Below, in pieces: positions 38,101 through 44,100 of a DNA stretch of 64,000 bases. The notes beneath the pieces are model-generated. The model made no database searches, was not told where the DNA came from, and saw only the letters and a program-made list of their open reading frames with translations. The DNA comes from Magallana gigas (Eukaryota). The DNA lies in contig NC_088855.1 in NCBI RefSeq assembly GCF_963853765.1, positions 434,001-498,000 on the forward strand, read 5' to 3'. How positions within the stretch are numbered: position 1 is the first letter of the stretch; every line of letters starts with the position of its first letter. A program made the position numbers and the translations under genes.

Positions 38101-41100
38101 CATTTCATGGGTAATTAATGACACTTAATGCTGTCCTGTAACTTACTGTCACACAGTTTAACATGGGTAATTAATGACACTAAATGATGTGCTGTAACTT
38201 ACTGTCACACAGTATATTTCATGGGTAATTAATGACACTTAATGATATGCTGTAACTTACTGTCACACAGTATTACATAGGTAATTAATGACACTAAATG
38301 CTGTGCTGTAACTTACTGTCACACAGTATTACATAGGTAATTAATGACACTTAATGATGTGATGTAACTAACTGTCAAACAGTATTACATGGGTAATTAA
38401 TGACACTAAATGATGTGATGTAACTTACTGTCACACAGTTTAACATGGGTAATTAATGACACTAAATGCTGTGCTGTAACTTACTGTCACACAGTTTAAC
38501 ATGGGTAATTAATGACACTAAATGATGTGCTGTAACTTACTGTCATACAGTATTACATGGGTAATTAATAACACTAAATGATGTGCTGTAACTTACTGTC
38601 ACACAGTATAACATGGGTAATTAATGACACTAAATGATGAGCTGTAACTTACTGTCACAAAGTATAACATGGGTAATTAATGACACTAAATGCTGTGCTG
38701 TTACTTACTGTCAATCAGTTTAACATGGGTAATTAATGACACTAAATGCTGTGCTGTTACTTACTGTCAATCAGTTTAACATGGGTAATGAATGACACTA
38801 AATGCTGTGCTGTTACTTACTGTCAATCAGCATCATGATGTAGAAGATTGGCCACTCACACTCAATTCCATCAAACAGCTGTCAAAAAAGAGAGCACCTA
38901 AGTATATCAAATATACAATGTAGTACAGTAGTAAGATACACCAATTGAAACTAGTCTACACATTTGTCAAGATACGATACTTTGTTTACCATTTATATAA
39001 ATATTTCTGCATTGATCTAACTTTTACTTTTTTGGCGATGACATTCTAATGAAAAAAATACATCACACAAAATTACACAGTCATGATGTCATTTGATATC
39101 AGAAAATTTTAAGATTGCAAAATAAATGAGTGAAACAATGGAAAAGTGTATCACTTCTACCCCATTTTTGCAATTTTTTTGAAAAGTGATAAAAAAAAAT
39201 GGATACGGGGGATCTACAATCCAACAAATAAATCATTCACAGTTACTGATACATTTCAATAGAAAGATTTACAGTCTAATTTTAATTCAAAACCCTTTTG
39301 TTCATCTTTTAATTTTCTCCTGTACTAATATTTTGAATTTCACATTAGACTCTTAAACATGTACATTCATGTAAATTAGCTGTATCGTGATAGCCACTGT
39401 TGATCTCATCTTAACCTCAATCAACAATGGTTCCTTCAGAGTTAGGATTTACCATGTACCCCTTCCTAGCATGCAATATTCATGTAATATCAACAACACA
39501 TACTTTGATCTCTGCGGGTTTGTAGAAACGTCTCTTGTTGTCTTCCAGTACTGTACGGTATCCGTCTCTCAGATATCGCTTTATACCATATTTCCCTTTT
39601 AGTTTGCGGAGAACTTTGCTAATTGTACGATTTTTTATGTCCTCTTCGTGTAAGGCAAAAGCAGGCCAGCCTATGGTGGAAAGAAGGGCAGCATCTGTGT
39701 TCTGTCAGAGAAAAACATTGCTACAGAGAAATCGCAAAGTCTCTAAACAGATCAACATGTCTTTTTACAATCATTTTCTTCCTTTTTTTATTTACCAACT
39801 GACTATCGTACATGTACAATAATAATTCTTAATACAGTGTGATTGGTATTTAATAAAAACAAAGTAATAATATCCTTTATTTGTTAACATTTTTTATATA
39901 GGTATATATTAAGTAGATTTTTGCACATGCATGCATTAATGTAAAAGCTGCTCCTTGAAACAGGAAGAAATCTTATTAACTAGCTGTCATGCAATAACAA
40001 ATTTACATGAAACACATAATTAATGAAGGTATAGATACGTGTATATAATTATAATGATGATCCACGATACTTTGTAAAACATAGTAATCTACATTTTTAT
40101 TTTTTTTTGCATTCTGCAAAAGGGGAATACCAGCAAGCAAATATTTTGAAGAGATGAGGAACTTTTAAAAAATCTAATGAACAATGGAAGGGGAGACTGC
40201 ATGAGAAACATGAACATATAGATATGGAGGGAAAGGATTATATAACAGAGAGTAAACTCTTCTGATGATGATAGATGATAGGGTTATGACACAACAGTTC
40301 TGGGTTGTTTTATCAATAGAATGAGATTTCCATTCTTGTGCACCATACTCTGGACTATTAGCCTATTACTGATAAAATCGTTACTTTATCTTAGATAAAT
40401 TTAGTACACAAAAAAGAGTAAAAACTTGAATTTCGAGCTCATTACTACCCATTTAGGTAAATATTATACATGTAGTACCAAGAAGTGTCAGTAATAGTTA
40501 AACTCCTACTTTCATGGTTTAATTCGATGTTGATTGACATTTTAATTGTTGAGTGACAGATCTGTAACTGTGTACATCATTGAAGACAGACCTTGGAGTT
40601 GGACTCTCTTGGTAAAATGCCTTCAAATATGGTGCGGTTTCTATTGTGGGCGTCGTAGTCCACAAAGACGACGGACCAGGAAGCCCCCTGCTTCCCGAAC
40701 AGATTTTCTCCGTTCACAGCTTCCAGGGCGGCCTTAGCTATACCTATAGAGCTACAGAAGAGAGAACAGGCATTATCAGACCCACACAGGATAATGGTGG
40801 AGCCACCAGCACACTTACACCCCACTGATCTACACCCTACAACAAGCACCTGCTGAACTTCTTCTAACAAATTTATGCACTGGAATGCGACTCCATACAA
40901 AGTTCTAGGTAATGAAATACAATGTAAACCCAAAGTATTTCTGCCTACATTATCTAAAAGGAAACATATACACTTACAGAAGATGGATTTCTGATAACTG
41001 TCAGCAAGGCACTCTTATTTGGGCCTATCCTATACATATGTTTTGCCCCTTGCACTCGCTTGTTGGTTCTCATCGACTTGTAAAACTCAAAACACTTAGT

Positions 41101-44100
41101 TTACCACAAAAAATAAAGATGTATATCTACCAGAAAGTTAAATAGTTGTTTGGATTCTCTCAAACCATTTATACGGACATTGAGGTCCTTATTTTTCAAT
41201 CCTCTCACAAATCAAATCTTTTGAAATCTTGGTGTAGTGACAAAAACTAATTTTTAAATTTGTTTGCCAGACAAAAATATCTCGCTTATTTTCCCGATCT
41301 GAATCCAGGTCACAGTCACCCACTGACCACCTGATTATCTTACCTGACCTTGTGAAAGCATATTCACTCCACAAATGGGTAGGCTTTAGGATATACTTCA
41401 TGTGTAGAAAACAATAGATATTTTGTTTGCAGCTCATTTTACATTGGATTGACTTGTTTAGTTTGTTTTACATTGAGTTGACTTGTCTGGTTTGTTTTAC
41501 ATTGAGTTGTCTTGTCTGGCTCGTTTAATCATGCCAAAGACTTGGAGATGATGTAAAAGCGATACTAATTTGTTCTCATTTCAAAAGAGAAGCTGGCATG
41601 GATGGATGAATGAATGAATGAATTAATGGTCGCATTGATTATGTAACATTCAATAAAAGAATCTTTACCTACAATGATAAACGAATATGGATAGTATAAA
41701 GTGATATATCAAGTTAACAGTTAAACATATCATACAGACAAGTGCCCGCCAAAGGTTAACTACTGATACATATAGCAGTAAATCTGTTACCCTGGACTTG
41801 TTTCACCAAGATGTGAAGTGTACCTAGACATGACGGTGTCTGTGGACGATTCAAGATTAATGATTTTGTAAAATATCAAGGTACATGGCACTGATAGTTC
41901 TCTAACACAAGTGTCAGCGAAAAATCTGAAATAAAATGATTTTTTAAGATCCTACATGTATTAGCTATAGAGCAGGGATGATGGAGGCTACAGATGGTTA
42001 GACAGACACACGGGTAACACACCGAGCAGACGTGCATCAGCGGAGCTTGGACTCGTGCCAACAAACCTTAGAATTTGATTCTCGCGGTAAAATTGACTCA
42101 AAGATAGTTCTGTTCCTGTTGTGTGCATCTATATCAACATAAATGACCGAGGAAGACGTTCCTTGTTCACCAAACAAATTGACTCCATTGATGGACTCCA
42201 GCGATGACTTGGCCAGACCGATGGAGCTACGGACAGACAACCACACTTTTACAGGAACCTAACTACCGCCATACCCACATATATACAAACATAACAATGA
42301 TTTATCTACCTCTATCACATAATCAAAAATTTGAAGTACCTGTGAAAGTAGTGCTAGTGCCATAGTGTTCAAAAACTATCATAAGAACATCTGAAGTTGT
42401 TATATTAAAAATATCACCAAAATACATGGACATTCAGACATGTATATACCTAGTTAATTTCTGCATAACTAGTTCAATCACATTACTTAGATCAAGATAT
42501 TTTAAGTATGACATATTGTACTTTTTAATACGACAATATACAAACTTTTTACTCATTTTGTAACTGCCTTTGATAGTTTGATGTAAACTATAATATATAA
42601 AGTGAACCTTGCATGGATTTCTGTTGAGCCATTGTTGTACTTGCTTCCTCTTTCCCAAGTGCCGTAATCAGGGGTTCTGTATGCCCTCTCAACATAAAAC
42701 ACCAAATTCTGTACAAAGTTTACTTCATCCGTAGTAAATATAATCTGAAACCAAGTCAAAATTAGAATTACAACAAAGAACACCAATTATGAGCAACAGT
42801 TGATAAGTGATGTCTTACAACGATAGCCCAATGTTTTCTCCAACAAAGCAATTCAATTCAACTCATTAACCAATTGACAGCAATAAAGGGGCAACAAGAT
42901 GGCAGTCATATTACTAATTTTTAAACATTTTCTAACATCAACACTGACCTGTAGTCCTGAGGTGATCATCTGGACCAGGAATATCAAGTACAGTCCAATC
43001 ACATTAATCTGTTGGAAACAGAGGACACTAGTAAGAATATCAAGTACAGTCCAATCACATTGATCTGTTGGAAACAGACGACACTAGTTAGAATATCAAG
43101 TACAGTCCAATTACATGGATCTGTTGAAAACAGAGGACACTAGTTAGAATATCAAGTACAGTCCAATCACATTAATCTGTTGAAAACAGAGGACAATATC
43201 TAGAATATCAAGTACAGTCCAATTACATGGATCTGTTGAAAACAGAAGACAATATTTAGAATATTAAGTACAGTCCAATTACATGGATCTGTTGAAAACA
43301 GAGGACAATATTTAGAATATCAAGTACAGTCCAATTACATGGATCTGTTGAAAACAGAGGACACTAGTTAGAATACTAAGTACAGTCCAATTACATGGAT
43401 CTGTTGAAAGCAGAGGACAATATTTAGAATATTAAGTACAGTCCAATTACATGGATATAATAGAGAGAGACAGCATATAGTTGAACCAAAGCTATACAGA
43501 TATCCATGTATAAACCATATTACATTGAATACAAACCATGTGACAAATTTATCTTACCTACTGCCTTTGTCTCTAACAATACATACACAGGTATCCATGA
43601 TTTAGTCTGACCAAAGATATACATTACCTCTAAGATTTTCTGTGTTTCCGGTTAAACAACCTGTAGTGGATACCTTGATTCTACCTGTAGTGGATACATT
43701 GACTTCTACCTGTAGTGGATACACTGATTTCTACCTGTAGTGGATACATTGACTTCTACCTGTAGTGGATACCTTGATTCTACCTGTAGTGGATACATTG
43801 ACTTCTACCTGTAGTGGATACATTGATTTCTACCTGTAGTGGATACATTGATTTCTACCTGTAGTGGATACATTGATTTCTACCTGTAGTGGATACATTG
43901 ATTTCTACCTGTAGTGGATACATTGACTTCTAGTTAGAATCTTAACACACCTGTAGATGACCATACTCATCGTCCCTGTACACAGGATCACCTGTCACCA
44001 TGTGGAAGGCCGAGTGAAGGGCAAACTCTGCTCTCTGATTGGCCTTAAAGTCCTCAACCTGTTCCATTAAAACAAGCATTCCAGTCATAACAATGATAAT

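Follow-up and report, generated by a model that had tools for sequence, protein, structure and literature searches.

Why does an oyster gene for a regulator of glycogen breakdown contain two similar versions of one coding exon, placed one after the other, and are both of them used? This question is raised by PHKB, which encodes the beta subunit of phosphorylase kinase, in a 64,000-nucleotide (nt) stretch of the Magallana gigas genome (NCBI RefSeq assembly GCF_963853765.1, contig NC_088855.1, positions 434,001 to 498,000 of the forward strand). We refer to this whole stretch as the window, and coordinates given without a contig are positions within it. A first-pass annotation, made from the sequence of the window, had noticed the pair, here called exons 7A and 7B, and had predicted that the two are spliced in a mutually exclusive manner. 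Our analysis indicates that 7A and 7B are, with high probability, tandem-duplicated, mutually exclusive exons of oyster PHKB that originated in the oyster lineage.

Structure of the exon pair and its reading frames

PHKB was identified by tblastn of full-length PHKB proteins against the window, with Patella PHKB (P0049) and the M. gigas X1 protein (P0272) as the queries for the gene model. The gene lies on the minus strand, and its coding part runs from 45249 to 23199 in about 24 coding exons. The closest protein is Magallana (Crassostrea) gigas XP_065934011.1. Pfam matches on the matching proteins agree with this assignment: P0272 contains the GH15-like domain PF00723 (213 bits) and the KPBB C-terminal domain PF19292 (87 bits). 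The C termini of PHKB proteins (CSVS, CSLS, CLLA, and CSIT) are CaaX-type motifs, putative sites of farnesylation.

The pair is flanked by two constitutive exons. Exon 6 (42608..42744; 137 nt) ends in "...GCA AG," that is, two bases into a codon (phase 2), and exon 8 (39503..39701; 199 nt) opens on a codon boundary (phase 0). Between them lie 7A, the upstream member (42067..42226), and 7B, the downstream member (40592..40751), separated by an intron of 1315 nt. Both are 160 nt long, are preceded by AG and followed by GT, enter in phase 2 and leave in phase 0, and have one open frame that encodes a 53-residue peptide. The first-pass annotation had described the exons in the same terms, and its coordinates proved exact, with the gene on the minus strand. 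The two copies are identical at 104 of 160 nt (65%) and at 40 of 53 whole codons (75% amino acid identity), leaving 13 residue differences; the earlier figure of 13 in 54 included the serine codon that is split at the junction and shared by both forms.

The exon 7 peptide corresponds to residues 250 to 302 of the oyster protein. Both versions match residues 238 to 289 of human PHKB (PDB 8jfk_B), 7B with an E value of 1.2e-18 and 7A with one of 1.8e-16, which excludes a chance origin of the pair. In the same structure, 8jfk, the peptides score 62 to 69 bits on the beta subunit and 25 to 27 bits on the alpha subunit. When the 564-Mb genome was searched throughout in six frames, these two copies of exon 7 were the only ones found.

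Because 160 is not a multiple of 3, inclusion of both exons or of neither leads to an early stop, in agreement with the frame shift predicted beforehand. The 6-7A-8 and 6-7B-8 joins leave the frame open. The 6-7A-7B-8 join reaches a stop after 5 codons of 7B, and the 6-8 join reaches one after 10 codons. Hence, only mRNAs that contain one exon or the other can encode the protein. Transcripts with both exons or with neither, whose stops lie far upstream of later junctions, would be removed by nonsense-mediated decay. Each productive mRNA would thus run from exon 6 through 7A or 7B to exon 8, and the gene would yield two full-length beta subunits that differ within the glucoamylase-like D1 domain, at 13 of the 53 residues encoded by exon 7. 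Mutually exclusive use of 7A and 7B is well supported.

Known devices that can enforce such exclusion were considered. U12-type introns were rejected, as all donors are GT and the U12 consensus is absent. Steric exclusion was rejected as well, given the 1315 nt between the copies. A search for competing RNA pairing (docking and selector sites) found only AT-rich, imperfect inverted repeats; duplex energies compared with those of shuffled sequences scattered among species without consistency (z scores of -2.9 to +2.1), and nothing was conserved or significant.

Age, conservation, and divergence of the two copies

We compared the PHKB loci of Crassostrea virginica, Ostrea edulis, Saccostrea echinata, Mytilus galloprovincialis, Tegillarca granosa, and Sinanodonta woodiana with that of the window. 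The loci of C. virginica, O. edulis, and S. echinata have both versions between exons 6 and 8, 7A first and 7B second, and AG and GT are intact. A single exon 7 is present at the loci of M. galloprovincialis, T. granosa, and S. woodiana, and the annotated PHKB proteins of other bivalves and gastropods have one intermediate type of exon 7. The comparison with other loci that the first-pass annotation had proposed therefore places the pair in four oyster genera and a single exon in three other bivalves. Since the same arrangement occurs in four genera, the duplication predates the split of those genera. The coding exon would have been duplicated in tandem on the oyster lineage after its separation from those of mussels, ark shells, and unionids, and before the divergence of Ostrea, Saccostrea, and Crassostrea/Magallana. 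No named pearl oyster (Pinctada) protein was among the protein search matches, and the non-oyster bivalve loci compared are the three named above, so that the lower bound on the age of the duplication is not tight.

The amino acid sequence of each copy has changed very little since then. The 7A peptide is identical (53/53) across the four oyster genera; the 7B peptide of the window is matched at 53/53 residues in C. virginica and S. echinata and at 52/53 in O. edulis. Orthologous 7A copies differ by 20 to 33 synonymous substitutions and no amino acid changes, and orthologous 7B copies differ by 14 to 26 synonymous substitutions and 0 or 1 amino acid change. The ratio of nonsynonymous to synonymous substitution rates (dN/dS) among these orthologs is <0.02 for both exons. 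Between the paralogs 7A and 7B, synonymous sites are saturated. All four single-nucleotide polymorphisms of 7A in one RNA run (X22, described below) were synonymous. Both copies are thus under strong purifying selection, given 14 to 33 synonymous differences against 0 or 1 amino acid change, and the earlier description of an old duplication with both copies constrained holds.

These data bear on two readings in which the pair would not encode two working proteins. The first takes the pair for an artefact of assembly, for example, a haplotype that was collapsed or duplicated. We found no support for it. Assemblies made independently for four genera agree in this arrangement, nucleotide identity between the copies is only 65%, with synonymous sites saturated, and about 20 public DNA-type runs contain 79 to 95% of the sampled words of the stretch. 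We regard the chance of an artefact as negligible. In the second, one of the two exons, whether as a poison or decoy exon or as a pseudo-exon without use, would serve only to lower the amount of productive mRNA. The premature stop upon double inclusion is what such an exon would produce. However, the frame stays open through the whole protein with either exon by itself, RNA reads join each of them to exon 8, and a dN/dS of <0.02 for both copies reflects conservation of protein sequence that a decoy exon does not need. A decoy or pseudo-exon is highly improbable. Neither an artefact nor a decoy or pseudo-exon can explain the data, because the residues of each copy have been held fixed since before the genera split.

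In S. echinata, 2 or 3 extra tandem copies, about 139 bp apart, lie directly upstream of the complete 7A (L005:4488-4680). They consist of the 7A acceptor region and the first 18 codons of 7A and may be a local repeat or a feature of the assembly.

The 13 differences between 7A and 7B were placed against a set of 88 distinct exon 7 segments of animal PHKB. As stated in the first-pass annotation, 7B retains the vertebrate-like motifs (AKAALEA, which includes its KAALEA, and SWSV.FVD), and 7A has Ser or Thr at several of these positions (KSSLES and GTSSS) and lacks the Trp. Its contrast between a conserved 7B and a derived 7A stands in part: 7A has indeed lost the Trp, but 7B also contains rare residues. 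Among the 88 segments, the 7A-specific residues S8, S25 (in place of Trp), and T23 occur at frequencies of 0%, 3%, and 7%, respectively, and the 7B-specific residues Y32, G44, and K20 occur at 0%, 0%, and 1%. Both copies are specialised, and 7B cannot simply be equated with the ancestral form, because each copy is identical to the single Mytilus exon at 46 of 53 residues and has some residues that other animals seldom or never show.

The Trp lost in 7A is also missing from the proteins of Daphnia magna (P0220), the nematode Cooperia oncophora (P0267), and several unnamed proteins (P0132 to P0134 and P0089), which read, for example, GSSVSV, GHSASV, or GTSSSV. Several lineages can therefore do without the Trp.

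It could be argued that 7A and 7B are biochemically equivalent and that the pair was kept by neutral partitioning of expression. The invariant core residues, including an Arg of the adenosine diphosphate (ADP) pocket discussed below, are indeed the same in both copies. However, neutral differences are expected to drift, whereas the 13 differences are fixed for each copy in four genera in which synonymous sites are near saturation, and they include residues that are rare or unseen elsewhere (S8 and S25 in 7A; Y32, G44, and K20 in 7B). We consider equivalence of the two forms very unlikely.

Transcripts and control of the exon choice

Four raw-read RNA runs from 2026 with the same species label (X21 to X24) were mapped on 39400 to 42900, giving about 220 mapped reads in total. 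All mapped reads were on the strand expected for a minus-strand gene, and reads with loose ends at 42747 continued into exon 5 sequence. Each of the four runs contained reads joining 7B to exon 8 (40592 to 39701; 2, 4, 2, and 2 reads). The junction of 7A with exon 8 (42067 to 39701) was detected in X22 (3 reads with 3 different starts) and X24 (1 read), so that both junctions at exon 8 are present in RNA. In X22, the depth was 5.7 to 8 over 7A and about 7 over 7B, both well above the flanking intron. In X21 and X23, it was <1 over 7A and 1.5 to 3 over 7B. These differences give at most a hint of sample-to-sample variation, as the numbers are too small for claims about tissues. The first-pass annotation had considered an exon that never appears in transcripts of any tissue as the outcome that would speak against its prediction; this is contradicted, since each exon is joined to exon 8 in RNA.

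Also in X22, the last 400 nt or so of the intron upstream of 7B (40804-41154) were covered at a depth of 3 to 5.6, with many variants and no junction listed. This signal could reflect intron retention, pre-mRNA, or the extension of an exon beyond its annotated end.

Assembled transcripts and gene models extend the read data. Four full-length RNA-assembled proteins (P0187, P0280, P0281, and P0283; contigs of about 3.8 kb) have 6-7A-8 uninterrupted, and the M. gigas X1 protein carries 7A. Two C. virginica RefSeq proteins, XP_022340646.2 (X1, with 7B) and XP_022340647.2 (X2, with 7A), are equal in length and differ at 13 residues, all within 258 to 298. Likewise, the O. edulis RefSeq proteins XP_056008768.1 (X1, with 7A) and XP_056008769.1 (X2, with 7B) are equal in length and differ at 12 residues, all within 248 to 288. 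A 146-residue query across exons 6, 7B, and 8 matched no oyster transcript fragments and gives no count of 7B transcripts. Matches to the 7B peptide among representative proteins were rejected as transcript evidence, as they are mostly short open reading frames that continue from exon into intron in genomic contigs; what they attest is the presence of other genomes and haplotypes.

Six intron flanks around the exons were aligned across the four oyster genera. The 74 nt downstream of 7A (41987..42060; +7 to +80) form the only clearly conserved flank among the six, with 21 of 78 aligned columns invariant compared with 3 to 8 in the other five. The hexamer UGCAUG occurs in this block at +34/35 of 7A in C. 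virginica, O. edulis, and S. echinata; the window has UGCACG at +31 (42036..42031), followed by a GU-rich run. In O. edulis and S. echinata, UGCAUG is found also 21 to 28 nt upstream of 7B. A genomic open reading frame fragment from another haplotype or a close relative (P0056) encodes D-A-C at the site of the motif and most likely carries UGCAUG there.

Rbfox proteins promote inclusion of an exon when UGCAUG lies downstream of it and repress the exon when UGCAUG lies upstream. The choice between 7A and 7B may be set by the conserved element just downstream of 7A (UGCAUG or UGCACG plus the GU-rich run). We tentatively propose Rbfox/CELF-type control through this block, favouring 7A where such factors are active; we give this proposal somewhat less than an even chance. 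As in the general model of Rbfox-controlled exons, a UGCAUG or GCACG motif lies some 32 to 36 nt past the end of 7A in each of the four genera, within a conserved flank; the oyster case differs in the weaker UGCACG of the window allele. The acceptors of the two exons show a small but recurrent difference: that of 7A is preceded by 1 to 4 CUGU repeats in all four genera (42227-42250 in the window), and that of 7B has a cleaner CU-rich tract (40752-40778).

An alternative view of the regulation, compatible with mutually exclusive use, is that the choice of exon depends on the physiological state of the animal (air exposure or hypoxia, season, or the gametogenic cycle of glycogen use) rather than on fixed tissue identity. 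UGCAUG-type elements usually mark tissue programmes, which argues against this view. In its favour, the depths of 7A and 7B were similar in X22 and the signal was mostly 7B in X21 and X23, and a duplicated exon of the oyster alternative oxidase (AOX) gene provides a precedent (PMC5589949). However, with so few reads and with coded run metadata, neither state nor tissue can be assigned to the samples. We regard regulation by state as possible but less likely than not.

Several observations weigh against mutually exclusive splicing under Rbfox/CELF-type control. The junction check proposed in the first-pass annotation was borne out at exon 8 only: the 7A-8 and 7B-8 junctions were seen in the four runs, but the 6-7A and 6-7B junctions were below the listing threshold of three reads. 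In M. gigas, the 6-7B join rests on the RefSeq models of other oysters. The 7A-7B junction was not listed, but about 220 mapped reads are too shallow for rare forms. With regard to control, the window allele has UGCACG, the weaker form, and not UGCAUG. Finally, a Pfam Fox-1_C search of the genome for an Rbfox-type gene matched nothing, controls included, and is uninformative.

Introns of PHKB contain large minisatellite arrays, at 31580-32350 and 33420-36136 (36-bp units), 37620-38825 and 42979-43456 (56-bp units), and 43659-43932 (25-bp units). An open reading frame of 903 amino acids at 33407-36118 was rejected as a gene, as it falls in a 36-bp minisatellite in which all six frames are open. 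A single-exon open reading frame of 261 amino acids (46541-47323) with a 3'-5' exonuclease domain (PF01612; E value, 1.8e-25) shares the strand of PHKB and lies upstream of its first coding exon, at a distance of about 1.3 kb.

The ADP pocket and comparison with known exon pairs

The phosphates of ADP are held by R211, Y213, R214, and R274 of human PHKB (PMC10978961). Equivalents of the first three are encoded in exon 6, as part of an ERAYR motif. R274 corresponds to exon 7 position 37 and is invariant in 7A, 7B, and the 88 animal PHKB segments. The equivalents of these four residues would together form an allosteric ADP pocket between domains D1, D2, and D4. The isoform-specific positions 25, 28, 29, and 32 lie shortly before position 37. 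Judging from this arrangement, the exchange of 7A for 7B might retune the allosteric response to ADP, or the coupling between domains of phosphorylase kinase, rather than its assembly, a suggestion that we regard as possible but doubtful.

Vertebrate PHKB has a mutually exclusive pair as well, exons 26 and 27 of the human gene. The Poecilia reticulata isoforms X1 and X2 are of the same length and have 14 differences, at residues 774 to 800. Like the oyster pair, the vertebrate pair belongs to this gene family and comprises two homologous alternative exons, of which each mRNA uses one. In contrast to the oyster pair, which covers residues 250 to 302 in D1, it lies in the C-terminal third of the protein. 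The oyster gene has no second copy of the vertebrate-type alternative exon at that position, and no second form of exon 7 was found in the vertebrates examined. Because the pairs are at different positions in the protein and neither is shared, we conclude that they are independent duplications, as the first-pass annotation had suggested.

Exon duplications in other metabolic genes offer further parallels. The COQ-2 gene of helminths, molluscs, and annelids reportedly has mutually exclusive exons whose homologous swap alters the behaviour of the enzyme in animals that tolerate low oxygen. The PHKB pair is likewise a homologous exon swap affecting a metabolic enzyme; it differs in that the COQ-2 exons belong to another gene and are spread over several phyla, whereas among the bivalves checked the PHKB pair is found only in oysters. 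Closer to hand, exon 10 of oyster AOX is duplicated in tandem, and a response to air exposure has been shown experimentally in the eastern oyster (Liu and Guo 2017, PMC5589949). As with the PHKB pair, a tandem exon duplication in an oyster metabolic gene yields two proteins of the same size, and one copy has novel substitutions near functional sites. Unlike the internal exons 7A and 7B, AOX exon 10 is the last exon, so that the choice there is 3' terminal. Our literature search found no paper describing the oyster PHKB pair, and PHKB is absent from the main text of a survey of duplicated exons in humans (PMC9741552); the automatic predictions in RefSeq already include pairs of PHKB isoforms for C. 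virginica and O. edulis.

The splicing switch itself is real but ordinary in kind. A more far-reaching proposal, which we consider speculative and rather unlikely to hold in full, is that oysters have a lineage-specific, two-setting sensor of ADP (energy charge), in which an intronic switch of the Rbfox/CELF type would direct a swap of 53 beta subunit residues lining the ADP pocket. Glycogen would then be mobilised at different sensitivities in contractile or neural tissue and in tissue that stores glycogen (or in normoxic and hypoxic states). Phosphorylase kinase is the classic point at which hormonal, calcium, and energy signals are integrated in the control of glycogen breakdown, and the glycogen content of oysters and its seasonal mobilisation are central to their physiology and to their value in farming. 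The pair adds the case of a metabolic regulator to the duplicated-exon switches, which seem to be common in the genomes of oysters. Its main value is as a natural experiment: a single gene supplies two beta subunits, both deeply conserved, whose differences are confined to the surroundings of the recently mapped ADP pocket, and their comparison can be used to probe the poorly understood D1 region.

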